Origin: Macrostomum lignano
Taxonomy: Eukaryota
Direction of reading: 5' to 3'
NCBI GenBank assembly: GCA_002269645.1
Contig: NIVC01000254.1
Location: 1-64,000 of the forward strand
DNA length: 64,000 nucleotides
Both the position numbers and the translations under genes were made by a program. The notes beneath the pieces were generated by a model. That model saw only the letters and a program-made list of their open reading frames with translations, had not been told where the DNA came from and searched no databases. Positions 11,941 through 61,692 of this stretch are shown here, piece by piece (within the stretch, counting starts at the first letter, position 1; each line of letters begins with the position of its first letter).

Positions 11941-13875
<1,935 letters not shown>

Positions 13876-29005: not shown

Positions 29006-29039
29006 GTGGTCGCTGGCTGGTGGTTTCTATCTAAAGAAA

Positions 29040-32000
29040 ATGTCAGTTTCATCTTTCCGCTACGCTTGCATTTACGCATTGATTGCCTTTGTTCTGTGCT
29101 TCAATCATTGGACTTCAGTTACCGGTAAGACGACTTTTATAAGCTACATGTAAAACAAAATTTTATGAAATAATGAATTAAAAATTTTTTTTCAGATGCA
29201 TGCTCAGGCTATAAATAGTCCAAAGTTCAGGAGTCATTGCGTGTCGGGCAGAAGACTCAGGAAGCAGCGTCTATCCTAGCTCCCTAGATGTTGGTTGGTT
29301 AATTCCACTGAGTTCTATAAAAATTAGATTTACGAAGCTGCAGATTCGCGAGTGCTGCGACATGATTCAAATCTACGAGTGGGCGCCATCGAGCGGCTTG
29401 CAGCAGGAAAAATTCAGGCTCACTGGGTCAGATGCGATCAGATCTGAGTATTTGCTGCTAAATGGTCCTGTGCGGGTGACGTTTCGAGCAACTGGTGGAG
29501 GCTCTGCCGTTGAAGGCGGATTTCGACTTATTTACGAGACTGACTACTCTTGTCTCTGGTAATGCTTAAAATTTTATCAAGTACGACTTTAGTAGAAGAA
29601 CGGGAAACTTAGTTTTTAACAAAAAAAATATTTCTGGTTTGCGTGAAAAACACACTAAGGTGATAGGAGCTTTTCATTTTTCGGCACGAAAACAGCATGC
29701 TCATTTAATTGATGGGGTTAGATATAGGTTCAAGTCCTTCTACGTACGGCGTACATGTATATTCAAGTATCCTTTTATTGCATCCAATTTGTTGTAACCG
29801 CCTGAGATTTACAGAATGAAAACATCGATAATATTTATTGTAGAAGCATCGCAAATTGTAAGCCAAAAGAGTGGTGTGAGATTCAGTCATCCTGGCTTTC
29901 CGAAGACGTATCCAACAGATTACATAAAAAGCTGGAGCTTCGATGTTCCCCGAAACTACAATCTGACGATAAGATTTGCAAACTTTTTTACTTATTCTGG
30001 AAATGACATTCTCAGCGTTTTCTATAGTCTAACAAAAGGAAATGACGCGCTGTATCAGTATTCTGGCAGTATAGGGCTTTTCGAGCTTCAATTCCGGCAC
30101 AGTGTGACTCTAACTTTCCGATCACAAAGTAACAACCCTGGCTACCATGGCTTCAGATTTTTATTCAACGTCACCGATACAAAATGTACCAGGTTTACTT
30201 AAGTTTATTCAAGTTTTTAGCTCAATTCAAGTTCAATTTAAACTCAATTTAAATAATGAACCATATTTCAGCCACATGTACAGGCAGAAATCTTTACTCC
30301 ACTTCTAGAGTTATTTCTTGCTTTGATGACTACATGTACTCGAACAGCACTACTGATTCAAGAAACTTGGATGTCCGATGGCCAATTCATTTGAACGACT
30401 ATAATATATCAATTCAATTTACTCAGCTAAAAGTTGAAGACTGCTACGACAGCATCCGCATCTACGAGGGAACCAATTTAATCAGTTCTGACAAGGAGAA
30501 GTTCAGGCTAAGCAGCAGGTCGGAGGCGCTGAATTCTGAATTCCGATTGAACGGCCCCATTCTGGTGAGATTCGTCACCGGCAGTTTGATCGCCGCTAGA
30601 GGTTTTAGATTTAGTTACGGGATGATATTACATCCGGTTTCAGGTAAATCATCTGTTGCACAATGCTTTAATTTTCATTAGAGGCAGGGGGCTGCGTGCA
30701 CTTAAGAGACATTGTCATATAACCGGCGAGAGGCATTACTGCCCATTCCGCCGACTCCCCTGAGCAGGCACACAAGCGCGCGGATACGTACGCAGTCATA
30801 CGCACAGGCATTCACACACATTATTTATCGTTAGGCATGTACACTTCAATGTCTTAGGGGTTGACCATCAAGGCCATTAATCGCACGAACAGAGCCAAGC
30901 CGAGGTTCCAATTTAGCCCCAAATTGATGTGACTGCACTTGGAATCGAGCCTGGGCCGCTGGCACATCAGGGAACAACAAGGCTACGACCCATATTAAAC
31001 CATACGATGAAATTCAACCATAAGCATTTTCTGTTCGACCAATGATACTGTATTCAAAATAAAATTTACACTTTCTTAGAATCAACGGAAATTTTGCGAC
31101 AGCGTAGCGGTGTTCGAACCAGCCATCCTGGGTTTTCAAGCCATAATCATCCGGCCAAATACAAAATTACTTGGAGCTTCGATATCCCAGAAGGCTACAT
31201 TTTAACAATAAAATGCACATATTTTATTACACATGACTCCGACTACTTGCGCTTCTACCAGGGCATCGTGCCGATTAATAAATGTCAAGTCCTATATCAC
31301 TATTCTGGAAGCATTCCAAAGGAATTACAGCTTCAGTTTGCTCGCAACTTGACCCTCGTTTTTCAAGCCATTAGAGGTGCGAATCCAGGCTTCAGATTTG
31401 AGTTTACGGTTTCTAAAACAAGTAGGTAGTTTATTAATTTCACATTACAAATTTGTTCCTTTATGTATTTTATCTGATCCCGAATGAATGCAAATTGAGA
31501 GATTTCATCCTGAGCTGTGGTCTCTAACTGGAGTAGTTCATTTTCGAGCAGTGTTTGAGTTTAGGCTGCTCCCATGTGAGGCACAATTGTTGGCTGAGAA
31601 GCATTGATAACGTCAGCACTCTCGCGTGCCCGATTAAACGGGTGAGGACCACTAGGACTTACCGGTGTACGATAGTAACTTTTAGTAGTCCTTGATTATA
31701 TTTTAGACGATGCTAAATATAGCTTACTGCTAAAAACCTTCGAAACTCATCAGCAGATGATGGAAAACACCATCACCGACTCCAAGTGTCTTGGCACAGC
31801 AATTTCACAGTTCTCGGGGGCGGCTCAGCCATCGCTCATTGGACGGTCGGTCATTGAATGCTGACTGCTGAATGGCAGTACTGCTGTGCTACAGTTGCAC
31901 CTGCCGAATCTTAATTGGTTCGTTTTTTGTGTTCTGTAGACATTCATGTACTGTAAGTTTTGTACTTCAGCCATTTCCCAATCATATCTGCAGGCTTCAG

Positions 32001-40200: not shown

Positions 40201-43200
40201 TGCTCAATGCTCCCTTCGTTGTGTGGTTCCAAAGTGACGGTTCTGCGACAAGATCCGAAATTTAATTTTCAAATATTTCAAATATTCGATTTTTATCAGA
40301 GTCTAGTTATGTTCCGTTTACTAAAACGGCGCTTTGGTTACTACGCAGGTTACAACGCAGAAAGCTGCTCCGGTGGGAAGACTTACTCGTCATCTGGAAC
40401 GATCGCGTGCCCCTCGTCTGGAGGCCAGTATTCAAACAATTTGGATGTTTCCTGGTTTATTCAAGCACGTGGTGTCAGCCGAATCCGATTCAGCAAGCTG
40501 GATGTGGAGCCATGCTGCGACAAAGTGCTCATTTATGAAAACGCAACCTCCACATCAAGCAGCTCAGAGAAGTTTCGACTTGTGCATGCGAACGCGACTG
40601 AGTCTGAGTTCTGGGTAAATGCGCCCTTTGTTGTGCGGTTCCGAAGTGACGGGTCTGTCACGAAATCCGGATTTCGGCTTTCTTACGAACACCGGTCAGA
40701 ATCGATTCCAGGTGAATGTCCAACGTTTTTTACAGCTGACACTCGAGTTGACTTTTGCCGATTTATTTTTATCTAGAATGTTAAATGGAATTTCAGCTGC
40801 TACTGAGATCATTCGGCAGAGAAGCGGTGTCAGACGGAGCCATCCAGATGTTGGGTCCTACAGCAATAACTACAAAAAGGCTTGGAGTATTAACGTGCCC
40901 AGAAATTACAGTGTTTTCATTCGATTCACAAAGTTCGACACGGAATCTGGCTGCGACTATCTTAGGATATATGCAGGAATTGTTCCGGAATATCAGCACA
41001 CGGCTCTGCAAGCGATTTCGGGCAATCATAGTCATCCGTCATACACGTTTTCGCATAGCGTTACCCTCGTTTTTACTACTGACGGCTCCTCTGTCCGTGA
41101 AGGGTTCGAATTTGAGTTCAATGTCCGTGAGTTTAAAGCGAATGTTAAGCAGTTTCTTACATTTTGAACCTGTTTTATGAAGAAAGTTCAGAACTTCTCT
41201 ATTGTTGTGTATAGACAAAAAAAGACGAAACGGACTTTTAGTTTCTCTCTGCATGTCTATTGTCTGGGGTAGGACCTTTTATTTCCTTAGAAGCCGAATA
41301 ATATAGTATCGCAAAGAGCAAGTTTCTGCGTGCGCTCGCTAGAGGCAAATATAAGCCGTGAACCGCGGTACTATAAACAAAACTTCCTCGACTTAAACTT
41401 TTATGTCCGATGATAGCCTTGAGGCTGTAATCATTGTTGAAGTAGAAGACATAACACCCATTGAATGTCCAGTGCAGAAAATGTAGACTAAAACTAATAC
41501 ATGCCTATGACTAGCAATATTTTCTCCGAAATTCAACACAACGCTTTAAAATGCATCCGAGCAGTAAGGTCAGCTCAATATTCAACATTTTATATCTAAA
41601 TGCACAGTGCTAATGTACTCCGCAGGCTGGCATCAGGATAAATATAAAGGCGGCCTTAGATAGAGTGCTAAGCTTTTCGTTCACTAAACGTGCAGGCAGT
41701 ACCCACCCCTCCGATATTATAGGTACACGCATCAACAGCTTAGAGAAAATTTGAATTTTGCTCGCAATTGTGACGGACTCTGAGTTCTCGTTAAATGCTC
41801 CCTTCGTTGTGTGGTTCCAAAGTGACGGGTCTGCCAAGAAATCCGAATTTCTATTTTCAAATATTTCAAATATTCGATTTTTATTAGCGTCCAGTAATGT
41901 TTCACTTACGTACTAAAATGGCGCTTTGTTTACCACTCAGATTACAACGCAGAAGACTGTTTCGGTGGGAGGTTTTACTCGTCATCTGGAACGATCGCGT
42001 GCCCCTCCTCTGGAGGCCAGTATTCAAACAATATGGATGTTTCCTGGTCTATTCGATCACGTGGTGTCAGCCGAATCCGATTCAGCAAGCTGGATGTGGA
42101 GCCATGCTGCGACAAAGTGCTCATTTATGAAAACGCGACCTCAGCCTCAAACAGCTCAGAGAGGTTTCGACTTGTGCATGCAAACGTGACTGAGTCTGAG
42201 TTCTGGCTAAATGCTCCCTTTGTTGTGCGGTTCCGAAGTGACGGCTCTGTCACCAGATCCGGATTTCGGCTTTCTTACGAACGCCGGTCGGTATCGATTC
42301 CAGGTGAATTTTATGCCTTACATTTATAACAGCTAACACTCTGGTTCACTTTTGCTGATTGATTTTTATCTCGGATGACAAATGGAATTTCAGCTGCTAC
42401 TGAGGTCATTCGGCAGAGAAGCGGTGTCAGACGGAGCCATCCAGATGTCGGGTCCTACAGCAATAACTACAAAAAGGCTTGGAGTATTAACGTGCCCAGA
42501 AATTACAGTGTTTTCATTCGATTCACAAAGTTCGACACGGAATCTGGTTACGACTATCTCCGGATATATCGAGGACTTGTTCCGGGATATCAGCACACGG
42601 CTCTGCAAGCAATTTCTGGCAGAAATACAAGTCTTTATCTGTCATACACGTTTTGGCATAGTGTTACCTTCGTTTTTACTACTGACGGCTCCTCTGTCCG
42701 TGAAGGGTTCGAATTTGAGTTCGGTGTCTGTGAGTGTTACAATAAGTCTAAATTACGAGCTATCTTTCAGTTTTTTCACTTTTTATATTTTGGATTAGTT
42801 TATGTAGAAAGTTCAGAAGTTAGGTCACTAATTGTCCTGTGCAGAAAATCTAGACTAAGTTTATGTATTTTTGTTTAAAATGTATTCTCTTGGCCAAATA
42901 CGGGCAGAGAAGAATATTTCTACTCCGGATTATGCGCCATAGGATTATCGAACATTGTATAATGAATTACCGCTTCTAAGCAATGAAAAGGAACTTACAG
43001 AAATTTCCTTTCAATTACATAAAAATTTTGACTTACACAAAATTTTTTGTGCTGCATTAACTCATCATGATACTATATTTACAGATTATCCTGAATTAAA
43101 GGCGATCTTTTCAAAATGGACCGGAATGGCCATAGGTGGCTCGAAATTCAGTGTTTTACTGATTTCCCTGCATCAAAATGTATCAGCAAGGTGTTACTTA

Positions 43201-46200
43201 GATCTTGAATGTGGAAGCCGAACTTCGGAGATGGCAATGAATTCCGTAAGCCGTGAATTTTCGTGCATTAAACTTTCGAAAAAAGTTGCATATATTTACT
43301 GGTTTAAGTTTTTCTTATAATCTTGCATAGCGAATGTAATCTTTTTCGACCTTTTAATGCAGGGGCGGGCAAACTTTTTAGAGAGTGGGCCAAATAATAC
43401 TTTTGTTGAACAGCCGCGGGCCGGAGCTCAATAACGAGGCAACTTTCTTGGTAGATAGAAATACAGTTTAGTTTATTTGCATATCAAGCTTTTAATTGTA
43501 CGTTTCATTACAATTTTTGAAATACATGTATCATTGAATATGCAGATATTTGCTTTATATAAAGTCGAATTAACAAATGATAAGTTTAAGTAAAAATGTC
43601 GTTTAAAAAATTACGTAACAGCTCTTACTTCCGATGGCAATAACATCAGCGCTGATGAAAAAGTTATTAGTTACTTGCTACAGATGATACAGTTGATATT
43701 TAATGAAGGAAAATAGTACTAGCAATAGAGAAAAAGGGCAGTAAAAGGGACATTGACAGGGAATTATAATAGGAAAGATACAAAAAGAAATACATTGACA
43801 AAATGCTCGAACAATGATGGGCAGTGATAGCATGCTGTTAGAGGAGATAATGGTGACAAATTTTGGTTGACAGACATGCCCAATCTACAGTCTGTTAGCA
43901 GAAATTCAGTCATTTGAACTTAATGAGATGGGTGGTACTGTCTGCCCTGAAGAAGTGCTTCAAAATCCGGCTTGATAGACGAAGTAGACAGCAGAAGGAT
44001 ATCATTAAGATGGCGGTCTGAAATCTGGGAACGAAGGCGAGATTTGGTGAAGCTCATTTTGGAAAACAGCTGTTCGCAGCAAGAGGTGCTCCCAAACATG
44101 GCCACAATACGTTGAACATGGGCGATGGATTTTGGAAAGTTGTTGGATGGGAGAACAAGGTCGCGAAAGAAGGCTAGAGGGGAGGAAGTGCGGAACTTTG
44201 CCTTCAGTCCATCGTTGCACTGCAGCTCAACCAACTCCATCTGGAGGGCAGCTGGGGCATCATCCACCGAGCAGTCAAAGGGAGCAGTGAGGAGCTTGAA
44301 GTCCACAGCCAGGCGTCTGACTCCTGCAAAGCGGGAGGCAAACTCCTCCCGCAGAGAAGCCACAACCCCTGCGCAAGTGACCAGGTCCACGTCATCTGGG
44401 GCACAGGCAGCAAGACGAGGAAAGTGCACAAACTGACCAGCAGTCAGCTGAGCCTCCCACAAGCGTAGCTTGACCTCGAATGCAGTGATCTCAGCGTGCA
44501 TGTCCGTCACAAGAATTTCTTGGCCTTGAAGTTTTATATTGAGGGCATTCAGGTGTGCAGTGACATCAGCCAGCAGGGCCAGGTGAGCAAGCCATTTTGG
44601 GTCAGAAAAGCAGTCCGCATGGGGCAGATTCTTCTGGCGCAAAAATGTGACAATTTCCTGCTGCAGGTCATCACACAAGAAAGCATGGCCCCACGGCTCA
44701 GCCAGCGGTCTTCGCAGAAGTAGAGCAGGTCTCCATATTGCGCATTCACCTCGTCCACTAGACTCTGGAACTGGCGATCGTTGAGGCTGCTAGAGAGGAT
44801 GGAGTTGACAACTTTCACCACAATCGACATGACATCAGCAAGTTTGGCAGACTTGGCGCACAGGGCCTCCAGATGAATAATGCAATGCATCTTTTGTATT
44901 GGCTGGGTATGGCCGGCAGCCTCACAGTGATGCGGCGCCTTTCCTCTCTCCAGTCATTGCTGGGGCACCATCGGTCGTCACACACACAAGGCGAGAAAGA
45001 TCAAGTGAGTGCTGCTCAACACACTGAAGCACAGCATCAAAGATGTCCTTGCCAGTGGTGGTGCCATGCAGTGGGACAAGCTGCAGAAACTCCTCGTGAA
45101 TCTTGAGGTCAGCAGTGACTCCTAGGATAAAAATGGCCAGCTGGGCTGTATCTTTCATGTCAGTACTCTCGTCAAGAGCTAGGGAGAAGGCAACTAAATC
45201 AGAGCAGCAGGTCTTCAGCAAGTCCGACATCTCCTCAATGCGCCGTCGAACAGTACGGGATGAGAGGCTCACGCTCTCAAAAGCAGAACGCTGTTCTGGA
45301 CAGACAGAGTTCACCACAGTCACAAGGCACTCCTTGATGAAGTCTCCATCCGAGAAAGGCTTCATCCGGCAAGCTAGTAGATGGGAGACCTCGTAGCTTG
45401 CACGAGTCACCTTGTCGGCCTCAGTGGTCTGCTTGCGGAAGAGCAAAGTCGTATTCTGCAGGTTGCCAGACAGCTTTGCGATAGCTTCTTTCTTCTTATC
45501 AGCAGGCATTGAAGCACAGGCTGATGTTTGGTGATTAGTTTCCCAGTGGCGACGCACACTGAATTCTTTAAGGACAGCCACAATCTTAAAACAGATAAGA
45601 CACTGCGCCTGGCCAAAGCGCTCAACAAAAAAGTACTTCTCCTGCCAATCAGCTTTAAAGGCCCGACACTTGAGATCTACTTTTCTCTTTTTAGCAGGTT
45701 GAGGTGTAGTAGACATGATTAGATAGATAGATGGGAGGCACACTGTGACACTGGTGGAAATTTTATTTTAGGGTAACTTTTAGTTAATAGGCACATAAAT
45801 AAACAGATTCGGGAGGAGGTGGTCTACCAACAGCAGGCTGCAGCCAGCTAAACAGTGCAGGGGCCAAACCAACTCTTTTCTCTCTGGATAATATAACAAT
45901 GTCTAAGGCTTGATAGGAAGACTGCTAGAAAGGGGAAGAGAACTTATGGACGTACGCCACGTGCCCAGAGGGACAGGCAGCCAAATTGAGCTTAACGTTG
46001 GGCACGGCCCATACCTTCGAATCTTCGAATCTGACAATATACTATATAAAGGGAGAGGGGAATAAGTCTTTGTTTGCTTATTAGAGTCTAGACTCGTTAG
46101 TAGAGCCTTAGAATCTGGAAAATCTAGTGCCAGACTTATGCGGGCCGGATTTTAATGCAAATGATATGCTATGTGGCGGGCCAGAAAATAGAGCCTCGCG

Positions 46201-48619
46201 GGCCGGATCTGGCCCGCGGGCCGGAGTTTTCCCGCCCTAGTTTTAATGTTTTAATGTGAAATCAAAACCAAATTTACGGAGGTCTTAAATTATCTGAATT
46301 GTTTGCCATTCCCTCAGACGATCTACTCACAGCGAAGATCAGCTAAAAAATTGTTCTTATTTTCTGGAATCGTCTCAGATACTGCTGTCTGCATTCGAAA
46401 CATCACGTGCAGACTCCGTGGCAGCGGTATGAATGAACTGGTTGAATCGACTCCAGCACCTGATGGTAAAACGTATTTAATCATTTTCTGAGACTGTAGA
46501 TCTGCAAAAAATTTTGAATAGGTGAAAGTGTCTGAATTCGATAATTAGCAAAGCCATACAATAACTGTATCAGATTAATGATTATCATGCCCCAATTTCT
46601 TTTAAAAGTATGAATCTGATTTTCAGTTGACCCAGTCTCGCTTGGAATTAGCCTGATTAAGCCTGAGCTGTGGAGTCTCTCAGATGGTTTGATTCGGTTT
46701 CGAGCTGTGTCTCAAGCCGAGTGTCGGCGAGTGAGGCATCGCTGCGAGCTGAGGCTTTTCAATGGAAGCGCAGTCACTGCTGCGCAAATGAAGCGGGTAA
46801 GAATAATGTAGTAATGCGTAGTTAAAATATTTAGCAAAATATAATATACTTCAAGAGTAATTGCTATGATAGGCGTGTATAATTAAACGATGTACTGTAG
46901 GCCCGTACTGATATGCAGATATACGCAATTGTATTTTCCTTCAGTTTACAATACCCAGCTAGCGTATTTTCATTCTGATACAATTGCTACGTCAAAACTT
47001 CAGCAAGCATCACAGCCACGTACATCTCAGTGTGTGAGCAGAGTTCAGACAGACTTTGCTGTGGTGGCTGAGCTCATCGACACAGTCAATTCCACGATAC
47101 TTTGTTACAAGCAAGCCGGAACAGTCAACTATTCTCTGCCGGTTATGAAACTGCGTGAGTTGAGTTAAGATTATGAAATCAATGCATAGATGAATACAAA
47201 TAATAGGAATTTAGTATATAGAACTTCATTAGAACAAGAAGTATATATATTCGCATAACGTCACTTGAATCGAAATTGAACGAAAAAAAGCAATCTAACA
47301 TGCTATTACTATTACTTTATTCATCGTAAAGTTGATTCTAAAACAAGAAATACTTTATTCGAATATTAGGCGTTTCTGACTCTGTTTTCAAATAAACATG
47401 TGAAATTGGCGGCAATTTTGAGAGTTCTAATCAGGTGAAAAATGTGTCCTATGTACAGCTGATTTATTCCATGCTAAAAATTGAAAATAAAAGAAAAGAT
47501 TCTCAGCTCCTTGCAATGATCATTCTCTTATCCCAGCTGTTCGAGAAATTCAATGGAGATTCCCAGATTCTGCTGGAATCACTGCGGGTGCTGCAGTGCG
47601 CATTTTGTTTACAACAGCTGCAAGCATCCGAGGCCGATTCGATTGAATTCAGCGAATTACCTCCAGGTATCGCTTTTGAACTCTCTGGCTAATAGTTTCC
47701 TTCATAACAGCGCATAAAAAGCAAGGCCCTTGATTCATTTAAAACAAACTATGTAATCAAAGCCCGTTTCTGCGTTTTTTAATTGATTTCAGTTGAACCA
47801 AATGACTTACAGCTTGAGTTGATTGATCCTGAGCTGTGGCTACTCAATGGAGCGATTCAGTTCCGTGCGGTTTCCGAACTCGCCTGTCCCAGTGTGAGGC
47901 ATCGCTGTGAGCTGAGGACGGCCACTAATTATTCGATTCCTGCGACACTGATAAAGAAGGTTGTTTTTGTCTGTTGTCAGCCTTTTTTGTAGCTAGCTAT
48001 TTGTGCAAGATAGTATGCTTTGCTTAACTTCAGGATGTCTCGAAGCCCACCGGACCTCAGTGCTTCAGCTCGGTGATGTCGCAGTTCTTGGCGTTCGCTC
48101 AGCCATCAGACGTAGCGGGTTCCACTGTGAGATGCCGCCTGCTCAACGGCAGCTCTGCGCTTCTCATGCATCCCGAACTGGGTTTTGGTGAGTTTCGCAG
48201 CTGATTTCAGATGTTATACACGAGGAAGCAGCCGTGCTTTAAATATTGGCATATTGCCTCCATCAACAGGAGAGACGAGGCTGGCGGGAGTCTGGGAGCG
48301 GCCACTGCTAGCAGCTTCATCAACTACGGCTGTTCTCGCCATCATTGCACTGGTAGCAGTGGTGGCCTGCTTTGTGCTGATGAGATCTGGTCGGCGGCCA
48401 CCTTGGAAAGAATCGCCGGATGCGTCAGTAGTGAATGAGTCAATGAAGATGCAAATGACAGTCAGTAACCAATACTATGGCGAATCAGCAGGCATTGTAA
48501 GCAGCTTTAATGTGATTTGAGGCACCAGACTTCATCATATTTTCAGCAATTTCAAATTATTAATCATGCTTGCATCCGACTTTCAGCCTGATGACTCAAC
48601 CGGAGTTTACGTCACGTGA
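34248..48619 (+). CDS. CUB-domain type I membrane protein paralog 2, apparently intact, 898 aa
   Basis: Exons 34248-34323 (signal peptide), 34402-34752, 40361-40711, 40797-41126, 41953-42303, 42394-42729 (5 CUB), 46627-46796, 47004-47154, 47793-47959, 48034-48187 (two copies of a two-exon domain), 48270-48496 (TM), 48587-48619. Total 2697 bp; phases are compatible and I found no internal stops. The model assumes 47507-47666 is skipped. Confidence 0.8.
34897..35191. mobile_element. Foldback MITE with TA target duplication
   Basis: ~125-bp imperfect inverted arms (TTG.TTTTGTCAGCCTAACTGAG..) with TA on both sides; absent from the paralogous intron at ~41295-41310. Confidence 0.85.
35267..35502. 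mobile_element. MITE with perfect 66-bp TIRs and TA TSD (Tc1/mariner type)
   Basis: 35267-35332 is the exact reverse complement of 35437-35502; the empty site is visible at ~41370. Confidence 0.92.
35554..35953. repeat. Tandem duplication of host flank + 241-bp LTR (35579-35819) + Gypsy 3' end; second copy at 35969-36368
   Basis: Direct repeat at offset 415 separated by a 15-bp filler; includes 25 bp of host intron. Confidence 0.92.
35994..39845 (-). mobile_element. Ty3/Gypsy LTR retrotransposon: 3' LTR (35994-36234) present, 5' LTR/PBS deleted, frameshifted gag-pol
   Basis: Gag knuckle CQLCGKTGHMKSV, protease VLDTCS, RT YQDDILV, RNase H TTDAS and EREALAI, integrase H-H-C-C / HIDYAGP / DAYSKW / SNGLAERFV. 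LTR has TG..CA ends and a short purine tract before it. Confidence 0.95.
39930..40270 (+). pseudogene. Intronic relic of a CUB-A exon (copy A)
   Basis: Degenerate translation ..LNAPFVVWFQSDGSATRSE aligns to the functional NAPFVVRFRSDGSVTKSG; upstream part is broken. Confidence 0.7.
41540..41860 (+). pseudogene. Intronic relic of a CUB-A exon (copy B)
   Basis: SLEKI*ILLAIVTDSEFSLNAPFVVWFQSDGSAKKSEF aligns to SSEKFRLVHANATESEFWVNAPFVVRFQSD; contains an in-frame stop. Confidence 0.75.
43360..46240 (-). mobile_element. hAT DNA transposon (Charlie / GTF2IRD2-like group), both ends intact
   Basis: TIRs CAGGGGCGGGCAAACT / AGTTTTCCCGCCCTAG; 8-bp TSD TTTTAATG at 43352-43359 and 46241-46248; subterminal GGCCCGCGGGCC motifs. 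Confidence 0.93.
43920..45716 (-). pseudogene. hAT transposase split by at least two frameshifts
   Basis: AKKRKV NLS, CLIC..RRHWETNH finger, LALDESTD, TTDGAPAM, HCIIH, RWLSRG, CCEQLFS spread over three ORFs. Confidence 0.9.
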
Positions 48620-50665
48620 AAGAGCCCAGAGTATGATTAACTTCTTTCTCGAGTAGACGAAAGATAACGACCGTAATGCACTTATAAATATAAGGCAAGT
48701 ACTTTTTTATAAAAAGCTTTGAAAAACTCATCTCCATTCCTACTACAGTTTTACTTCGTTTTAAAGTCAGTAATTACTTCCAACATTAGCTTTATATGTA
48801 TCTGATATATAAACCCTACGTTTTAGGTTCTCCTGTATTCCTGATGGTCCTGAGGCTTTATATATACAGTTTAAACTATAACCACTGTTTTTGTAATTTA
48901 CTCAAGGTGGTATGGTAGTGCTTAATAAAACAAAATTTATCATAATTGAATTACTTCGAAATCTAATGGATAAAATTATTAAATGAATTCTGTTTAGTAC
49001 CTTGACAATTTGAACTTGTGAAGCAACAATTTTTGAGCATGTAGACTTAGGAACAGTCTCGGATATTTAATAAGGAGTATCAGAATGTCAATTAATTTCC
49101 ACTGAAGTCTTCCGTCGGGTTTTTATTTTTTTGAGTTTGAAGTTTTCGTGCGATTAATTGAAGTAAAATTCTGATTTCAAAAAAAGTTTTTAAATTTCAT
49201 CAATAACGAAGTCTTTAAAGCTTTTTCAGTTTCCTATTGCCAGTTTTTTTATAGTAGCAGTTTTTTGTCCCTGCAGCCGTAAAAGCTTACTAGTAGTAGT
49301 GTAGTGACCTTCGCGAAAGTTCGATGCATTAATTATGAATTATTTATTTCTAGAAATTTCCCCGTAGAGTACAAATTAAATTCTCGAAATTTCTTCTCAC
49401 AGTAACTAATTCTAATACTCGCATTTATAAATATTCAATGTATAATTTATTACAGTAAGGCAGTACTACAATTAATGCAAATCTGATAGGAATCAATGAT
49501 TCATATTTGTTTTGTTATAATGCTCAGAATATTCTAGAAGTTTCCGGCGATGCTCCTGATGGCTATAAATAAACGGTGCCAACCGCGGATAATCTTTACT
49601 TCTCCTTACTTCTTACTCCGCTGTCTCTTAACCACATAAAATAAGAACCACCGCCTAGCTCTTTCCCTTTCTTTAATTTACATTAAATTCTACAGTAGCA
49701 CTATAAGAAAACGATTCGGGGTCAGCCTTGGCTTGAGTTTAGTGACGAAGTTTATTCATTCACGTATGGGATTATTTCTATCAAGGGATGCTTGCTGGGA
49801 TTGATGTGTTCCTTATTACCAGACTTTCTGTGTAATCAAGGAACAATCACTTCTAGCTCTTTGCTAGGTAACCCAGTTATCAATTGAAGGTACTGCTTAC
49901 CTTGACTTAGTGTGAGATATCTCATCTGTTGTTCTCGCGGTACGTCTCATGTAGATCTCGTGTAGATCTCTCCTTGTCTTCCGGAAGAATTAACAACTTG
50001 AATCTGTTGTTCGGGTCCAGCTTCTTCTTCTACTTCCGATGAAGTTGTTCCGGCCGGTATCTGCAGTCAGGACCAATCAGAGGCCTCGTATCAACAATGG
50101 GTATCCTGCGCCGAACTGCGGTTTCACTTAAGCCTTCTCTTTCTAGTAGTGCCTCACTGCACTCTAGGTATTGCTCCGGTAATCTCTAATAGATCCTCTA
50201 AGATCTATTAGGGTAGTCCTTCGGGCGACTACAGCCAATGGAGTCTCAAATGGACTCAAGAGTCTCAACAGACTCTAACACTATCAAAATAGGGAGTCGA
50301 CTCAACAACAACTGGCGCAATGAGCAAGGCTTACTGCAACAACTCGACCAAGTCTCGATTGACTAGGTGATTAGGAAGTCCTCTTAAGGCTTCCTCTTCG
50401 GAGCTCTCCTATCGCCGGAAGTTGGCTCCGGGTCCGCTTTGGACCGCTTGTATTTATAGACATTTTTGCCAGCAAAAAATAGCAACATAACTCGCGTGTT
50501 GCGTTAAAAATAGTAACATGATTCATTCTGCTGCTATAAATAGTAACATGATTCATCTGCTAAAAATAGTAACATGAATCATCCTTAAGTGCGCATGCAT
50601 GCACTAGCTTACTTATAGTAGTATTCTACGATTTATACTTTGCGTAGGAGATATAACACACTACA

Positions 50666-50885
50666 TGATGCTTGCCATCTGGGAGATGCTATCTGGGGGA
50701 TGCTTGCTATCTGGGGGATGCTTGCTATCTGGGGGATGCTTGCTATCTGGGTGGATGCTTGCTATCTGGGAGATGCTTGCTATCTGGGGGATGCTTGCTA
50801 TCTGGGGGATGCTTGCTATCTGGGGGATGCTTGCTATCTGGGTGGATGCTTGCTTTCTTGGGGATGCTTTCTATTTAGGGGGAAT
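50666..50885. repeat. 18-bp minisatellite (TGCTTGCTATCTGGGGGA)
   Basis: About 12 units; explains the DACYLG ORFs. Confidence 0.92.
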
Positions 50886-51358
50886 GTCTGTTATCTTTGT
50901 GAAAGCTTTAATATGTCATCTTTGTCAATTTTAGAAAAAAGAGATTCATAGGAAACATCTTTGTCCGTGACAATTTTACTTGATTAATGTGACTTTTAAA
51001 ACTAAAGAAAAAGGAGTTAGGTCCTGAGAAAATGTGAATTTTAATTTTTTCCATGAATAATTTTTGCTCCTTGCTTATTGGGCCCCGAAGGAGGGCACTA
51101 GATTGCTAGTCTATCAACTAGCATGGCTTTCCATGATAATATGATAATCCATGATAATGATAATACGGCCTTCTAAAACGCTTAGATTTTGCAATTTAAT
51201 CGCAAGCAATTTATCATGTGAAAGAAAAGCCGCAGTGCAAGGAAACTTCAGGCAGCGCTTATAAACTGCAAATATAAACAGGAAAATGTACGCCCGTACC
51301 TAAAACAAGGCATTCTAATTTCGCTTGAAGGCTCATGCAATAAAAAAATTATTACCCC

Positions 51359-51650
51359 GGGACCGTAGCCTAGTGATCTAGCGAGGTAGTGTCTGTGGTC
51401 AAGGCTCGAATCCAAGTGCAGTCACATTTATTTAAGGCTAAATTGGAATCTCAGCTTGGCTCTGCTCATGCAATTAAAGGCCTTGAGGGTCAACCCCAAG
51501 GCACAGTGAAGTGTACATTCGGAACGATAAATAAATAAATTTAAGGCAGCTGTACACTTCTGTACGTGAGAGTGCCTGTGCTTATGATTGTGTAGTGCTC
51601 AGGGGAGTCGTGGGAATGGGCAGTATTGTCTCGCTGGTTGTGTGATGAAG
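51359..51650 (+). mobile_element. tRNA-derived SINE, same family as 30712-30991
   Basis: TAGCCTAGTG A-box and GGCTCGAATCC B-box (51403-51413); body shared with the 30.7-kb copy. Confidence 0.75.
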
Positions 51651-54600
51651 CTATAACTTTTACCTCACTCGTATTGCACATGTGATAAGAGTTTTTTTCA
51701 TATTCCTTTCCTACTACTGTAGAGAGTTATTAAACCATACCGTAATGCTCTACTTAAAGTAATATTCTAAGAAAGTCAATTTATTCTAGAATGAGTCATA
51801 TCTACTTTAGGAATCACGCGCAAACAGAGTGATTTAGAACCCTGCGTGGGATTAACATTGTTTGATCAAGGAACCGGATTCCAACAGCTGTATTTATTTA
51901 ACTCCATATATGGTAATGCTCAAACATGCATGACCGCTTAATCAAACATGAATGACCTAAGTAAATACCCAATCCCAAACCGGTTTTTCTCCAAAATTTT
52001 GCTATAAATATAAGTGAAAATTTGAGTCAAAAATTCAGACTCAGAGCGGTCTCTAAGAAGAATCTGAAGGAACAAAGAAGGAGACCAATCTCTGAGGGAC
52101 CACACTTGTCTAATTGGTAAGCGTTTACCGGATTCAGTTCTTTGATTGTTAGCGTTAATAAGTTGATTAATTGAGTTATACGAGAGCAGTTCATTGTCGA
52201 TACATTTGAGAAAGGCCTCCTTGTTTCCTAGGATATATTACTAGAGGATTTTGATTGAGTTATCCATTACGTTTCGGACGTAACGAAGAAGACGCCCTTA
52301 AGGAGGACCTATCACAAAACTTGAAGACTTCAATTGTTCATTAGGGCGCACGTTTTATTGTTAATTTCGAGCTCGAGGACCGTCACAAGAATTCTGATTT
52401 GCTCTCGTTTTGGTCGACCCACAGATAAAAAGTCAAAGACTCCAGAAGACTACAGTTGATCACCGAAATCGGCCGTCACTACCGCTCAGCCAAGTTAGAC
52501 AGAGTCACACACTGCAAGACCCAGACGTCTGCAACCACAAGAGGAGCCGCTCCAGTAAGAGTTATTTGAATTTGCAAATACCTAGGCACTTGTTCCCCAG
52601 TGTCTAGAAGTGGGAGTTTTTGAGTGACTGATCACTACTCATAAACTCTTCACTACTTATTAGTAGCTGATATCTGTTCGCATACCATTTGTACGAGCGT
52701 ACTACAAAAATCAGAAACGACAGCGAGACAGCTCCCTTATCAGGGCATACCCGTAGATATCTGAAATCCTGCATGCAAGCGTCCAAGTTACATTGCAACC
52801 AGATGTGTAGCCAGAAGGTTAAGTATACGACAACCCTTCAAATGAAAAAGTGCTCCAATGGCAGCAGAAACACTCATTGGCAGTAGCTTTTGGCACGCTG
52901 AAGATACGGGCTGAGAAAAAACCTGGCTAAGAATACGAGCTAAGCATACTCAAGCTATTCAGCCTAAGCCCGGATAAAATGAAGTACGATCGTAGCTTTG
53001 TCGTCGAATTGTCAGACCCACCGCGCAATCATTTTAGCCTTCGATCTGATTAGTTGTTTACAGTACTTGTTCTTTATTTTGTGCAATTTCACATACTTCT
53101 GAAAAAACTGTGAAAAAACTTCATTTCTTCTAAGGATGAACGAATTTGACCAAAATTATCAACACAAGATACCATAAAATACTGATTTTTGCGAAATTCA
53201 TTATCTTTATTTCGAGATGATGTGCAACACTTTATATTCTTTGACCCCCTGCATGTGGCCTCTATCATACTGCTGTCGCTACCAGTCTTGATTAACCACT
53301 GGGTGGCAACGCAGCTCAGGGAGAGGTAAGGATGACTGGTATTTCAGCTCTGCCGTACTCTGTTCCTCTCCCCCGCCCTCCGCAGGACTCAACCGTATGG
53401 GCATCAAGGCGGTGGCCACGGCTAATCTCAAGTCATGGCTAGTCAGTTCAAGGAAGCATTTAATGTTTAAATGTCTCCTTTAACCCGGATCTCTCCGATA
53501 TTTTTAAGCACGGGAATTTCTGCCACCTCATCCATGCCTATGGGCTACCGGGCGACCGATCACCCACTTTCTAGAGAGGGACAGAACTGCGAACGACGGC
53601 ACCACCGGATCTTCCTGCGCGACATCGTAGCACCAGCTGCCCGTGATTGCCATGGGTCTGTGGAATGGGCGGCAACACCTCCCATCTGCACCCAGTATAC
53701 TCCAGGAAGCCTTGCAGCTATGTTGTGTATTGGATAGTCGATGTGTCGGTTGATTTGGTTTTACTGAGAGCTCAATCCATCTATTCAATAATGCTAAAAT
53801 GATTTCATTTATGCGCACTGGCTTTGTGTACGTTCTACGTACTCATGGACAAAGAAGACAAACGCTATACTGGCAAATCGCGAGGCCGATTTCTGGAAAT
53901 AAATTTTCGCTACAAAATACAGTATGAGACACTCGCGACTTTCAATATGAGTTCCAGAAGGTGCGAGACCGTAGTGGATGTTGTGCTAAAAAACTGAAAT
54001 CTTGAAATCTGCGTAATAGTGAAATCTGTGCGATTTACAAGTGTAGCTTCCTTCTGCTTTAGTTGCCCGTGCCCCTATTAGTAAAGAAAATGACAGGTTC
54101 ATTTAAATTTTCATATGGTGAGAATTGAAGTTCTTCGCTTCAGTGTTTATATACATCTATTGAATCGGAAAACTTACGAGCAATAACCAATTAAATTCGC
54201 TTGCAGAAGCCTTCAATATTTACATTCCTGCTAATCTTTGTGATTCGTCTACCGGTGAAGTTCGCTCTACGAGAGTAGTTATCTTGTCTATGGTTTCCGT
54301 TCGGGAAACACTTGATGGATTGAAAGGCCGTTTCTTATTTTAAATACATGCAGATGTATTATTTCTTACGCGTAACTTCAGCTTAATATTTTTGGAATTT
54401 TAGGTCTAAATATATAAATGTAAAGAAAGTTCAACTTGAAATTGCTAAGGTTTAATAAAGTTTACAAACTGGTCCGAAAATTGCAAATGACCCGTGAAAA
54501 CTCAAGCAATTATTTCACTTCATATTATCACTTGGCTGTGTTAATTTAAAAATGTTAGTAACAACAGCAAATTTGTTCCTAGTATAGCTTCTATTGATAA

Positions 54601-55979
54601 TATCTGCAATGTTTTTGTAAATGCAACTCAAAAGATTAAAAGTCTATTGAAGATCAAGTCTAATTCTGGAGATGACCATTTTCTGAGAGGCATCGCCAAA
54701 TACAGATTCTATTGAAAATATTAAAAGGTTGTTGAATAAAAAATACACAATGGCTGTGCACACTCTTATTAATTTCCTTTAAGAGCGTAAGCCATGAGAA
54801 CATGCTGCTGTATTGATGTCACCATGAGAACTTACATGGATTTACACAATTAGGTTCGAAGTTTTTTACTGCTAACCAAAGCTACCTACATGAAAGTGCT
54901 ACACGTAAATAGAAATCGCAAAGAAACATCTGCTAAATATTTAACCTTAAACCACGACTACATTTACCTAGTAGTGTTTCCGTAGCCATCAGCTTTCTTT
55001 TGCCAAAAGATCTGTATCAATGTTAAAGACTTCGCCCAAGCTCGTTGTTATCGTAGTTACTGCTATTTTTACAGTTTGGTCATGTGATGAAAGGCTTGTA
55101 TAATTAAAACTTTGCTAGAAAAGCAAGCAATGAAAGTGTTTTAACAGATTTAATCTCTAAGAGAAACTTTCTTCTTGCTCTGACCAAAATGTCAGAGTCC
55201 AAAAAAAATTTACTCTTATAGTACATGTATAAAAGCTTCATTATATGAATAAACTTTTGAAACGCTATAGGTCCAGATTGAAAGTTTATCAACGAGAGCA
55301 GTAAATTAAAATCATGCTGGAATGAAAAACGTTTACTTGCCGCTTCTATCCGCACATATTCGTAGTGCAACCTCCAGCACATTCGGGGAAGGCTGAAAAA
55401 TGTTAGCGTCTTAAAGGCTGCAGTTGGCTGCTGTCTGGTGATTTTCACTTGCACCCGTCCTTGTTTATTTAAAACGCGTCACTGAAGCGCATTAGCGGCA
55501 GTCCAAACTTAGAAACTTGCTGATTTATTAAACTTTGAACTATTCATTGCAACTTGCAGTTTGTTGAAAGTATGCTCATATTAAATCATTTTCTGCATCA
55601 GATGGGCTGCAGATCAATCAACGGCTTGCTACTTGGCGTCGCGCTGCTAATTTTGTCACGCTCAGCACTGCAACCAGTTGGTGAGCAAGTTGCGATTTGC
55701 TGTTTTCACGGGTTACAAAGTTAATGTCAGTTTTTCAAATCTCTGAAATGGAGCTCAAAATTCAACGACAAAACCAAACCAACTGTAATGGATAACTTGC
55801 CAGAAAGTTCGACTAGAACCACAGAAATATTTTATCTATCAAGACTATAGAATGCAACCAAATTTTAGCTGAATTTCTTAGAAAATTAGGCAAACATCGC
55901 TTAAGAAATGGTTGCTTGCCTTTGTCATTACACCGGTTGCATATGTACATATGTGCAACCGACAGCTCAGCCGCAGCTA

Positions 55980-56212: not shown

Positions 56213-59200
56213 ATTGTCATTCTTAGAAACTGTTATAGTTTGAGAAGTCATGTTCGAGTTTGTCTATGATTAAGCCCCCCGTGTCTTCAACTCCACTCGC
56301 TGTGTTAGTCACAGGAACTTACGTGTTAGTTGAATAGTTGCTTCTAAGGTCCTCTCCTTCTAGCCTTCCCTGTCTCTAAGAAACGTTGCCTCGCTTCGTT
56401 GCTAATAGCTCGTAAAATTGGTTTTTTAAGTTTGGCTTGACCGATGTGCATTCTAAGGCCACAACAGAAACTAATCTTGGAAATAGGAATGCCAGACTTG
56501 GCCAAAAAATTAATTATCTATACTTTCACCATTGTTGGTGCTAAGTGTCCCAGCCCCTCCATTCTGTATTCCTAAAGTTTTTGCATAGAGAATATTTTGT
56601 GTCAAAAACTATTTCTCGTTGTAACCGCATTTTCAAGAAGGCGCGCTTCAAGTCGATTAGTCTGGCATATTATCGATTGTAGCCGACTTGATCCAGAGGC
56701 TTGATTCCGGAGCTCAACTTGACATTTTTCATTTAGGATATTATACACTAGATATTTATTTATTTTTTTAAACTACCTTTTAAGAGGCGTGCAAAAGTGA
56801 AATTCTAACCGCCGATAGCGGTGCGGTCTCGTGTCCTCCCGATCAGGAGTCGGGCAGCAGATATGGATCTGGTTTAGACAGTCGATGGATCATCAATACT
56901 ACAGGTGTAAAAATTATCAGATTTATTAAAGTGGACGTAGAACCAAAGTTAGACAATATTCTCCTGTTTGAGAATACAGGCGCCAACGATCCTGACCAAA
57001 TGAGATTCAGAATTAATGATGCAGATGCAGTCAGCTCCGAGTTCTGGCTCTCTGGCACAACTCTGGTGCGCTTTAGCACTGACGGAAGCATTTTTCGGAC
57101 TGGCTTTAAGTTTACCTTTGAATGCAAAAGCAACATTAGCATACCAGGTAAGAAGAAGTTTATATGATTTGCACTGTTCATTATTTCTTAAGTTAAAACA
57201 GTAATTTGCCTTTCTAACATAGCTGCCACAGAAGTAATCAGACAGCGAAGTGGCAACCGGTACAGTCACCCTGGGTTTTGAAGTAGCCGCTACCCGAGCG
57301 ACATGAAGCTGGCCTGGAGCATCCAAGTTCCAGCTAGTCATTTATTGACTATTAGATTGATCACCTTCAAGACGCAGGCCGGTCGTGACTTTCTGAGGAT
57401 TTATCGGGGCACAGTGCCTAATATCGGAAGCGAAGCACTGTATGAGTTTTCGGGGAAGAGTGCTATCTCGGAGATGGAGTTCAATGAAAGTGTAACGTTG
57501 CTATTTACAACTGGTGGTTATTCTACTAATTTAACCGATGGATTTGAATTTTCATTTAGTATTATAGAGGCGTGTGAGTGAAATCAATAATTTCTATTCC
57601 GGACAAACTCTCTCACGTGTTTCAAAAGTTCTGTATTACCAACGTATTGTTTCAGCCGCTTGCTTGCGGACGATAGTTTTAAAAGCTAGTAATGGAAGAG
57701 TCCGCAGTCCTACCTTCGATAACGAAGTTAGTCAAGGTAAAAAAGAAATCTGTTGGCTCTTCACTGCTAGAGAGTTCATTGGGATCAATTTCCACAGACT
57801 GGACTTGGACTCACTGGACTCAAGCGGCAAAGTGTTTATCTATGTCAACACCGATGTGCCCAACAAGGAGAAGGAGGTGCTTCAGCTTTCCAATTCCGAT
57901 GCATTGACGTCGGAATTCTGGCTGGCCACATCCTGGTCAGTTCTCATCAGGCTCAGAGCAACTAAAATACCGACAGTTGAGTTTTCGTACAGGACCAATA
58001 GTACGCAGCAGAGATCAATGAATCCCCTGCTTATAACCAGGCGCCATCGTGGTAATTATAGAAATGTTTTCTGCATAAGTGCATGCATCCTGCAACTTTA
58101 AGCGGTAGCTAGTTCCCATGACATAATCATTTTAGGAATACTGCCGTACGTGTTGGTCATGGAAAAAATAAACTCAGAAAGTGGCTCAAGAAGCAGCATT
58201 TCTGGGTACCGATCGTACGGGTACCGATCGTACGGACTGCTCAACGCACATTATGACTTCTCAAAGTTCTTTACCCAAATATGGGTAATTAATGCAAAGC
58301 TGACGGAAACTGTGACGATCAGATTCGGCAATCTGTCAACCAAGTTTAACCAAGGCCAGTTGCAGGTATTTGCTGGCCCGTACGAAACAATGTACGGCAG
58401 CACCAGGCGGAATGTGTTGGCCAGTTCGAAAAAGGAAGTGGAATACCAACTTCTTGGTGGAGCAGTGATTGTGTACAGCTCAGACGTTTCGGCCAAGCAT
58501 TCTGGATTCGACTTTGAATTCAATATAGGTAAGAATTCCTTTTTTCTCATTTATAAGACTACGATAGTTCTTATAGCCCACACCATCCCAAAATTATCCC
58601 GAAAGTTATTTTTCAGCTAATAAATTTGGCTGTGCTTCAATATTTATAAATATGAATGTATTATATTGCACATTTGAATTCATATTTTAGCTATATTCAC
58701 CAGCTGTAAAAGTCAACCCACAAGAATTCAAAATTTCTGCTTTTTTGCTCTATAAATTTAAATTCGGCAGTTCAGCAGCTATACTGCAGCTGGGCTGGAC
58801 GTATTGCCACATGCAGCTTATTTCCATTGCGAATATACAATATTTTATTTTTATCCCTTAACGATTTTTCTCCCACAAAAAGTTAGCCAACAAGAGAAGT
58901 TCAAAAAGGGATCCTGGGATTTTTTGTCCAAGGGTGGTCGATCTTTGTAACACGTTGGCAGGATGTTGCAGCCGGGGTGACTATTTTGTTGAGTAAATAC
59001 TACCTATACGTCGTATTTCTTTCGCTCTATCTAGACAGATGGAAGCAGTCCATTTAGTATTCGTGGCCTTGAATGCAATTGTAATCGACATCAAAAACAC
59101 ATTTTTCGATTTCATTCAATTTTAGGTCATAGGATCTACCCAATATTTGAGCATTGGTCTGGGAAAGTATCTCGAAATAGCTCTACAAAACTAATTGTTC

Positions 59201-59539
59201 AATCTTCAGTTGCGAATTATTCAATTCACTGCCGTCTCAGGCCTGCGTGCGGGAATCGATCATTCGATGTCACTGTAAATCAAGGAAAATTCATATCACT
59301 GTCTAGTATGGATAGTTTTAAGCAAGCATTAACGCAAATGCCTTAACAATCTTCAGATGATCCACTCCAATGAGCAATGTTTAAGGGCTGTGTATTCTGT
59401 TTATTCGTCGAACCTTCCTTCTTTCGAGTTTTGCGCAAGGGATGCACAGTGCGGATTCATTCGGCCATTTGGAGTGACTACGGAAGAGTTGAAGCACGAA
59501 GCTAAATTCCTAGAACGTAAGCGTCGAAACTAGACCGTT

Positions 59540-59848
<309 letters not shown>

Positions 59849-61692
59849 AGCTGTGATTAGAATGCATTAATAACCTTGCAGCTGACCCGGAATCAGTAAT
59901 CATCGATCTGAAGCAGCCACAGTTCGCCTCAGTGACTGGAGCGGTGCAGTTTCGGGCGATATCCAGACTTGCCTGTCCCAGTGTGAAGCATCGGTGCGAG
60001 CTGCAGACAACCGATGGCAAATCTATCACTGCTCAACTAATCAAAAAGGTAAAGACGTAATTTATTTAGTAAATATTTGTCAGCAGATTCCTAAATAACC
60101 TGTGCAACTGCTATTTTCTAGAATATCACAGAGCCAACAGAGCCACAGTGCCTCAGCTTGGTGACGTCGCAGTTTGTAGCGGTTGCTCAACCATCTGTCA
60201 TCACAGGCGCCGTCATCAGGTGCCGCCTGTTTGACGGTAGCTTTGAGCGTCTCAAGCTGCCACAACAGACCACTAGTAAGTACTTATTCGCAAATTTTCT
60301 TTAAATTTAATTTTTGGTACTGCCGCACATCGCGGCGTCAATGAACCCGCAGCAAGCGAGGAGCAAGCAGTTTTCCCTAATCTGTTTATCTCTGAGCATA
60401 CCCAGGCCACGGATATGAGGCTAGGTACCAATGTTGGTTTTTGCGAGATGGAATTTTAGAGATTGTCTACTGCCTAGTAGAAAGTGTGGCACTTACTTCC
60501 AAATCATGCTTAGTGTGAGAAAATAAACTACGTCATGTTAGAGTGCACTTTGCAGCGATAGCAATAGAAAATTAGACTGGAAACCAATTGAGCTGTTATT
60601 TCCTCGGTGCCTATATTTGGGACTTATAAAAATGTCCTGGAAGTGCCACACCTTTTTATAAAAAATCATATAGTTTTGTTCACATAAGCAAGGGGTGCAA
60701 TTGGTTTAGAGAGCTCATAAACCTGAGAATTTGATTTTCAGAAGCGTTATTTGCAGAAAAAGCCTCCAAAACTTTATGTGCACTAACTCTGGGCTGCGCG
60801 TTGTGGTGCCGCAAGAAAAATCCAACTGATTGTGTTTAATGGTAAAGAGTTGCTTGATCTTTGCAGATGTACGGTTGCAAGGAGTCTGGGAGCTGCCGCT
60901 GCTCATTTCTTCATCAACAATAGCTGTCATCTCCCTAATCGCACTCTCAGCTGTTAGCTACTTTCTATTCAAAAGTTTGAAAGCCAAACGATCAAAATCA
61001 ATTGAAATGAATATTCGTCCACAGCCAAAGCCAAATCCTTATAAAAAGCATGTAAGTAGGCCTAGACTAAGTGGGTATTTACTCGTATCTTTCAAACCGC
61101 AATCTAATTCAGCCTTGCACTTTCGTTTTACGCTTTCAGCCCGCCAGTGAAGTCTATTTGAACTAATGTAGTACTTGACTTTCCATGCCGATTTTTATTC
61201 CATTTTTATCCTTGTCTACCTTTGATTTTGTCAATCAATAATCTACCAGACACTACTCAATACTGAGTAGTTAGTTCCTGAGTATAAAAACTGAGTATTG
61301 AGTACCTGAATCTACACTGATATTCTCTAAAAATTTGTGAATTGCACTTTAGAAATTGAGTTTTCTAAAGTCCTACTTAATTGTTCCGATATTGATTGAC
61401 TATGTGCTTTTTTTCATTTTGCTTCTGGTTCACACGCCTTTTGAAAATGCACTGATTAAAATATTCTTAAAACCTGTGCATATTAGTATCCATATGAAAT
61501 GCATATTTTTACACCTCACATGTATATATGTATCTTTTCAATCGACGATGTCCCAGGTTCTCAGCTTCTATCCAATATTTCTATAGTAATACGACCTTTG
61601 CTCTGGAGTCTAATTATTATTTTAAGATTGACCGGACTTTTTCACGTAAATACGGATAGGCCCAGTACCCTATTTTTTACCATAAATATGAG

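Follow-up and report, generated by a model that had tools for sequence, protein, structure and literature searches.

What is the short, cysteine-containing domain that recurs close to the membrane in a group of CUB-domain proteins of the flatworm Macrostomum lignano? The window analysed here comprises the first 64,000 nucleotides of contig NIVC01000254.1 (assembly GCA_002269645.1), read on the forward strand; it contains spliceosomal introns, and six-frame self-comparison, Pfam and tblastn placed three tandem paralogous genes on its + strand. An initial annotation, made from the letters alone, had pointed to a two-exon module of ~105 residues repeated in these genes. This module, here called the core, is probably a real coding domain, a sequence orphan restricted to Macrostomum, that folds as an immunoglobulin (Ig)-like β-sandwich, is encoded by a symmetric phase 1-1 two-exon cassette, and forms with a companion module, Z, a stalk between the CUB domains and the membrane.

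Copies, exons and cysteines of the core module

The core is encoded by two exons, the first in phase 1-0 and the second in phase 0-1. Copies A and B lie in gene 2, copy C lies in gene 3 (BOX15_Mlig017866g1, with the transcript-based protein PAA86983.1, or P0008) and a decayed copy, D, lies in gene 1. The exons are listed below with the supporting evidence, in which E-values are those of the profile hidden Markov model (HMM).

46627..46796, + strand: copy A exon 1, gene 2, 170 nt, phase 1-0, with Cys1 and Cys2 (ECRRVRHRC); HMM E 6e-28; counterpart exon at 3004-3173 of paralog locus L002
47004..47154, + strand: copy A exon 2, 151 nt, phase 0-1, with Cys3 (SQC) and Cys4 (ILC); same outer acceptor in the transcript-based paralog model P0006
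47793..47959, + strand: copy B exon 1, gene 2, 167 nt, phase 1-0; HMM E 4e-29
48034..48187, + strand: copy B exon 2, 154 nt, phase 0-1, the final extracellular module in gene 2; HMM E 3e-19
59882..60048, + strand: copy C exon 1, gene 3, 167 nt; PAA86983.1 mapping and HMM
60122..60275, + strand: copy C exon 2, gene 3, 154 nt; PAA86983.1 mapping and HMM
31474..31643, + strand: decayed copy D exon 1, gene 1; HMM E 8e-6 and 1.5e-4 for pieces in two different frames
31760..31910, + strand: decayed copy D exon 2, gene 1; HMM E 0.012

Copies A, B and C are intact, with a pairwise identity of 40-49% and between-copy six-frame self-BLAST E-values of 1e-19 to 4e-15, far beyond chance, which establishes the repeated module as real. 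An alignment of these three with the core copy of a further paralog, P0014, contains 20 invariant columns, among them all four cysteines (Cys32, Cys39, Cys66 and Cys90 in copy B numbering, in the pattern C-x6-C ... C-x23-C), as had been claimed for the clearest copies; NxS/T sites are also present in the module. All ten exon starts given in the initial annotation lie directly after an acceptor-like site, and the frame assigned to each is open. Exon lengths of 167 and 154 nt had been said to match across paralogs; this holds for copies B and C but not for copy A (170 and 151 nt), and the second core exon of P0014 measures 163 nt. The intron position and phases are nonetheless the same, and the exon lengths near-identical, in two independent paralog loci. 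Copy D, which had been described as degraded, has an AT in place of the AG acceptor, a frameshift, and two in-frame TGA codons, one at codon 4 and the other directly after the fourth cysteine; it provides an example of an unconstrained copy and was excluded from the core profile.

The Z module and its relation to the core

A second two-exon, four-cysteine module, Z, has the same exon number and phases (1-0 and 0-1) as the core, with the signature F..W.G ... C-x5-C in exon 1 and C-x5-C in exon 2.

43085..43245, + strand: Z of gene 2, exon 1, 161 nt, phase 1-0 (...FSKWTG...ARCYLDLEC...); HMM E 2e-18; L002 2352-2512
46318..46465, + strand: Z of gene 2, exon 2, 148 nt, phase 0-1 (...AVCIRNITCRLRGSG...); HMM E 2e-16
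47537..47666, + strand: Z', broken remnant of a second gene 2 Z, 130 nt, internally deleted; Z HMM E 6e-4
59126..59274, + strand: Z of gene 3, exon 1, phase 1-0; exact PAA86983.1 mapping
59357..59516, + strand: Z of gene 3, exon 2, phase 0-1; exact PAA86983.1 mapping

The 59126/59357 pair had been counted as a further copy of the core motif, a claim that fails: core and Z were related by hhalign with a probability of only 0.8%, and the core HMM does not detect Z. The alternative that the 59126 exon is a decayed core copy read in another frame (IIQFTAVS...) was likewise ruled out by the exact mapping of PAA86983.1. The gene 2 copies of Z and the Z' remnant come in addition to the pairs reported initially. 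The length of Z' is not a multiple of three, and a TGA is reached if it is spliced after A2; its counterpart in paralog locus L002 is intact as two exons (3907-4070 and 4236-4377). The open reading frame (ORF) at 47537-47666 appears in UniProt models as a linker exon (LFEKFNGDSQ...), and comparison with the paralog identified it instead as the deleted Z' in the wrong frame. Z precedes the core in all three full-length proteins examined. No Pfam family matched Z, and a word-indexed search with the Z alignment found nothing, a result that says little because the index also missed the known GenBank PAA paralogs.

It is nearly an even question, leaning slightly towards no, whether core and Z are one ancient domain type, with Z a highly diverged core duplicate and the stalk a tandem Ig-like array. 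The shared two-exon structure and phases would fit such an origin, as would the similar exon lengths (161-164 and 142-166 nt for Z, 167-170 and 151-163 nt for the core) and the presence of two cysteines per exon, spaced C-x5-C in exon 1 of Z and C-x6-C in that of the core. An AlphaFold2 model of the Z and C modules of gene 3 as a di-domain gave 590 matches at E<=1e-3 in a Foldseek search of the PDB; two-Ig chains (Fab heavy and light chains and T-cell receptor (TCR), E ~1e-5), aligned across both halves, make up the whole of the top 50. The hhalign and HMM results argue against common origin, as does the low confidence of the Z half of the model, for which the predicted local distance difference test (pLDDT) is 42-69. 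Z is treated here as a separate companion module, for which an Ig-like assignment is tentative because that part is so poorly predicted.

Coding status, expression and constraint

PAA86983.1 maps residue for residue onto the window across GT-AG introns and covers the exons at 59126, 59357, 59882 and 60122 exactly. The core is therefore a real, expressed M. lignano protein domain, and the family is anchored by gene 3 and by paralogs on other scaffolds, whatever the status of gene 2.

For gene 2 the question is less simple. Its exons are 92-99% identical to those of the P0006 locus and its introns 90-96% identical, and on these identities the two are recent duplicates; the M. lignano genome is heavily duplicated. 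The copies at 46627-48187 could be non-functional relics of that duplication, conserved only by their young age, which we regard as rather doubtful. Exon identity about equal to intron identity would be expected of relics, and the gene has also suffered an insertion of a long terminal repeat (LTR) retroelement, a duplication of CUB exon pairs, and the breakage of Z', which introduces a stop if included. There is no GenBank gene model over 47303-57302; as the gene also carries the broken Z' exon, the gene 2 paralog may be heading toward a pseudogene. The UniProt/UniRef models of the locus (P0005 and relatives; A0A1I8HLB7 and relatives) are open only through inner acceptors that put B2 out of frame, and are mis-spliced.

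Against decay, the A1, A2, B1, B2, transmembrane (TM) and tail exons of gene 2 are all open with intact splice sites, and direct splicing of A2 to B1 leaves the frame uninterrupted up to the stop codon, the TM exon included. The differences between copies A and B and the paralog locus are moreover strongly biased to synonymous sites: 10.5 of 30 substitutions are nonsynonymous where 75% would be expected (pN/pS 0.18; binomial p = 1.5e-6). Paralogs with no more than 33-50% identity have kept frame, cysteines and exon phases, in contrast to the decayed copy D, and this points the same way, towards constraint on the core as a coding module.

Sequence searches

The view that the module matches no nameable domain held at the sequence level. 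In hmmscan searches of Pfam, copies A, B and C and the full-length paralogs matched CUB only, with no Ig or other family at E<=1, and a profile search of the PDB with the core returned nothing below E = 1. A PDB search with full-length P0014 retrieved CUB proteins only, leaving the stalk without a match. An exhaustive HMMER search with the core profile over 1.84e9 representative proteins (cluster representatives) found ten proteins, nine of them from M. lignano at E 1e-15 to 1e-102. Judged by these searches, the core is a sequence orphan restricted to M. lignano among the proteins covered. Literature searches on the locus tags and on M. lignano CUB proteins found nothing relevant.

The tenth protein, P0011 from a member of the Lachnospiraceae, is the only match from outside Macrostomum; it consists of Ig_3/I-set repeats, and its whole-protein E of 2.6e-4 is summed over 4-5 repeats that score 3-11 bits singly. 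The similarity is centred on a β-hairpin, (Y/H)RC.(I/L)...NG..(V/I)T, and the F-G hairpin of the bacterial repeats aligns to the predicted C-D hairpin of the flatworm module. P0011 was considered as a bridge to the Ig superfamily and rejected; with an alignment positionally inconsistent with the AlphaFold2 model and such weak per-repeat scores, the match was not counted as evidence of homology.

The hairpin motif that drove this weak match ends both core exons: the end of exon 1 (VRHRCELRxxNGSxxT) resembles that of exon 2 (TVRCRLLNGSxxL), for example at 46728-46780 and 47100-47150. The likeness may reflect either an ancient internal duplication of the motif or convergence between β-hairpins.

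Predicted fold

AlphaFold2 modelled copy B from a 6-row alignment with a pLDDT of 81.7 and a predicted TM-score (pTM) of 0.73, as a domain of 7-8 strands (residues 7-11, 21-31, 37-42, 48-58, 68-77, 87-92 and 97-101) with short helices at 13-19 and 80-83. In the di-domain model the core half reached a pLDDT of 84-97, and all five models were similar overall. When the single domain was compared with the PDB by Foldseek, the matches had a TM-score (TMq) of 0.5-0.6, a probability of 1.00 and 10-15% identity, and the neighbours were almost all Ig domains (IgA1 and IgE Fc, TCR, CD22, tapasin, SYG-1 and shark UrIg2), the remainder being a few other Ig-like sandwiches. These models, together with the two-Ig chains matched by the di-domain, support an Ig-like β-sandwich for the core rather than a new fold. 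The 7-9-stranded Greek-key sandwich that defines the Ig superfamily is thus present by prediction only, and neither hmmscan nor the PDB profile search gave a significant match to an Ig family model. Because the Foldseek match is at fold level only, the core is best placed as an unassigned family that belongs to a fold class already known.

The closest comparison is with Ig constant-type domains (the C1/C2-set of IgA/IgE Fc, TCR constant, tapasin and CD22), with which the core would share a ~100-residue, seven-strand Greek-key sandwich, as well as an extracellular location, cysteines, NxS/T sites, tandem use in a membrane-proximal stalk and a phase 1-1 cassette. It differs from them in its lack of profile-level similarity, in a C-x6-C ... 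C-x23-C pattern in place of a single B-F pair, in lacking a C-strand Trp, in being split by a phase-0 intron, in its short A-B helix and in being found in M. lignano only. In canonical Ig domains an inter-sheet B-F disulfide packs on the C-strand Trp. In the core, predicted strand B has Cys32 at its end and predicted strand F contains Cys90; this placement, with a distance of 58 residues, would allow a B-F pair, and Cys39 and Cys66 are additional.

The initial annotation had left the choice between a divergent Ig/FN3-like domain and a new fold, and had named a confident HHpred or Foldseek match to a known domain such as Ig as its refutation. A Foldseek match to Ig was obtained, at fold level only, and it is the Ig-like half of the proposal that survives. 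FN3 does not: Pfam fn3 was not matched, the four cysteines are invariant, and no FN3 entry is among the top 50 Foldseek matches; FN3 domains typically lack disulfides. Sushi/CCP domains are ~60 aa long, with cysteines paired 1-3 and 2-4 and an invariant Trp; the core also has four cysteines but is 105 aa long, spaces its cysteines differently, and has no Pfam match to this family.

Several points weigh against the overall reading of the core as an expressed, Ig-like stalk module. The fold rests on AlphaFold2 runs with 5-6 closely related sequences; two of the five models of copy B collapsed (pLDDT ~30); the best single-domain Foldseek match has E 1.2e-3, with none at E<=1e-3; and the predicted C strand has no Trp, the only one, W16, sitting in the A-B helix. 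To these are added the tentative status of Z as an Ig-like module, the missing GenBank model and possible decay of gene 2, and the fact that the stalk and docking functions discussed below are deduced solely from where the module lies and how it is conserved.

A genuinely new disulfide-bonded fold, for which the modelled sandwich would be a default produced by a shallow alignment, would explain the collapsed models, the modest Foldseek E-value, the absence of any Pfam or PDB profile match and the non-classical cysteine pattern. It is nevertheless very improbable, as an independent AlphaFold2 run on another copy gave the same topology at high confidence, and the Foldseek neighbours fall overwhelmingly in one fold class. 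A juxtamembrane module of the SEA or GAIN/GPS type, cleaved autoproteolytically, is scarcely credible, having in its favour only that the core immediately precedes the TM helix and has four cysteines, and against it the absence of Pfam SEA or GPS/GAIN matches, a model with Ig neighbours that is essentially all-beta save for two short helices, the absence of G/SVVV from the alignment and of HL/T-type cleavage motifs from the copies, and a length of 105 aa, far below that of GAIN. SEA domains are ~120-aa alpha/beta sandwiches with a G/SVVV autoproteolysis motif, and GAIN domains span ~320 aa and finish with a Cys-rich GPS motif that is cleaved at HL/T.

Architecture and proposed role

With the core taken as an Ig-like domain, its setting can be read from the gene structures. 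The three window genes encode type I membrane proteins, with a signal peptide, 2-5 CUB domains, a stalk, a TM helix and a short tail. Gene 1 (~29.2-32.2 kb) has four CUB exons, the decayed core copy and a TM exon, and is without Z. Gene 2 (34.2-48.6 kb) runs from a signal-peptide and CUB1 exon through a large intron to two CUB1-CUB2 pairs, Z, A, the broken Z', B, TM and tail, and gene 3 (55.6-61.2 kb) is ordered signal peptide, four CUB exons, Z, C, TM and tail.

34248-34752, + strand: gene 2 signal-peptide and CUB1 exon; self-comparison, Pfam and tblastn
40357..42729, + strand: gene 2, two tandem CUB1-CUB2 exon pairs; Pfam CUB
48270..48496, + strand: gene 2 exon that encodes the juxtamembrane linker, the TM helix (LLAASSTTAVLAIIALVAVVACFVL) and the greater part of the cytoplasmic tail; homologous exon in paralog locus L002
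48587..48619, + strand: gene 2 terminal mini-exon, PDDSTGVYVT and stop, with the conserved C-terminal Tyr motif
56784..58528, + strand: gene 3, four CUB-domain exons, each phase 1-1, upstream of Z and core; Pfam CUB on P0012
60867..61051, + strand: gene 3 TM and tail exon (LLISSSTIAVISLIALSAVSYFLF)
61140..61166, + strand: gene 3 terminal mini-exon, PASEVYLN and stop; mapping of PAA86983.1

Pfam CUB (PF00431) scored above the gathering threshold both for window exons (E 1.2e-7 and 1.4e-11) and for the full-length paralogs P0006 (E 2.8e-18), P0012 (E 4.1e-9) and P0014 (E 9.7e-18). These three proteins share a layout of signal peptide (SP), CUB array, one or two Z-core pairs, TM helix and short Tyr-containing tail:

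PAA76314.1 (P0006): SP-CUB-CUB-Z-A-Z'-B-TM
PAA86082.1 (P0012): SP-CUB x4-Z-C-TM
PAA75150.1 (P0014): SP-CUB x2-Z-core-TM

The core is the last module before the membrane, and the last copy ends ~12 residues before the TM helix, which bears out its description as lying next to the membrane. In the tails of all paralogs an upstream N-x-Y is followed by the terminal mini-exon motif (S/T)-x-V-Y-(V/L)-(T/N), also present at the C terminus of P0014; these motifs hint at Tyr-based sorting or signalling.

The N-terminal CUB array, type I TM helix and short tail recall the multi-CUB single-pass proteins (neuropilins, NETO1/2, C. elegans SOL-1 and LEV-10, and cubilin-type proteins). In a PDB sequence search the nearest solved relatives of the CUB part were cubilin, MASP, neuropilin-2, PCPE and NETO2. 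Like the MAM domain of neuropilin and the LDLa domain of NETO, the Z-core unit is a non-CUB module placed between the CUB domains and the membrane; unlike them it is an orphan Ig-like Z and core rather than MAM, LDLa, FA58C or Sushi, and the likeness shown is one of layout. By analogy of position, the disulfide-braced, Ig-like Z-core modules would act as a rigid stalk that holds the CUB array, the likely ligand-binding part, off the membrane; the Ig domains nearest the membrane in many receptors offer a further parallel. If so, the tails of several BOX15_Mlig CUB proteins annotated as "hypothetical protein" would be structured Ig-like stalks and not linkers.

The most conserved stretch of the core is charged and not a hydrophobic core, combining V-R/K-H-R-C-E-L-R/Q in strand C (VRHRCELR) with R-C-R-L in strand F (VRCRL). 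The GFC face is the contact face in many Ig domains, and since the predicted C and F strands are neighbours in the GFC sheet, a role in lateral docking or dimerisation is plausible; the basic C/F-strand surface is probably used for lateral contacts, either in dimerisation or with a co-receptor. A bolder proposal would make Z-core a taxonomically restricted, ~210-residue juxtamembrane super-module born in Macrostomum or Macrostomorpha, with non-canonical four-Cys bracing and the invariant basic C/F face as a dedicated docking site for dimerisation or for an acidic or sulfated partner, and with a Z topology that could be novel. We consider this decidedly unlikely.

The phase 1-1 cassettes would allow the number of modules to change by exon duplication and loss, and this would explain the arrangements Z-A-Z'-B and Z-C and the broken Z' in the window. 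The locus offers a clean example of the gain, loss and decay of phase 1-1 exon cassettes among very recent paralogs. The core, an unannotated domain family, and its companion Z would enlarge the set of extracellular domains in a flatworm that serves as a regeneration model. The family is lineage-restricted, belongs to the commonest extracellular fold class, and occurs in an unremarkable CUB-receptor architecture; it brings no new fold or mechanism, and its value is one of annotation, in the form of a new Pfam entry and corrected UniProt models of the mis-spliced locus.

Neighbouring elements

The large intron of gene 2 contains, at 36209-38830 on the minus strand, LTR-type retroelement ORFs (RVT_1, E 3e-21; RT_RNaseH_2 / RNase H; weak rve), flanked by repeated stretches that are 100% identical (repeated segments 35483-36465; self-comparison). 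The 3-kb intron that splits the gene 2 Z module holds two long minus-strand ORFs at 43920-45743, one with a Spin-doc-type zinc finger (zf-C2H2_12, E 3e-6), which are possibly transposon-derived or a nested gene. In gene 3, the intron that separates Z exon 2 from core exon 1 consists mostly of a ~300-bp (TTAG)n microsatellite at 59540-59850.

Directly 5' of gene 1, at 26000-29150 on the + strand, lies a GC-rich (~55%) block in which numerous long ORFs overlap in several frames and which by eye looks like a frameshifted non-LTR retroelement; two of its ORFs were scanned against Pfam with no match. At 5173-5925 on the + strand an ORF matches the rhodopsin family of G-protein-coupled receptors (7tm_1, E 4e-11), and protein-level tandem repeats occupy ~3290-5170 on its 5' side. 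Tandem-repeat blocks, open in multiple frames on both strands, are located at 1-1000, 9270-9990, 10160-11140, 12740-14440 and 18090-20450, one of them with a low-complexity match to Pfam MSG. GC skew is strong at 6-8 kb and 10-12 kb.

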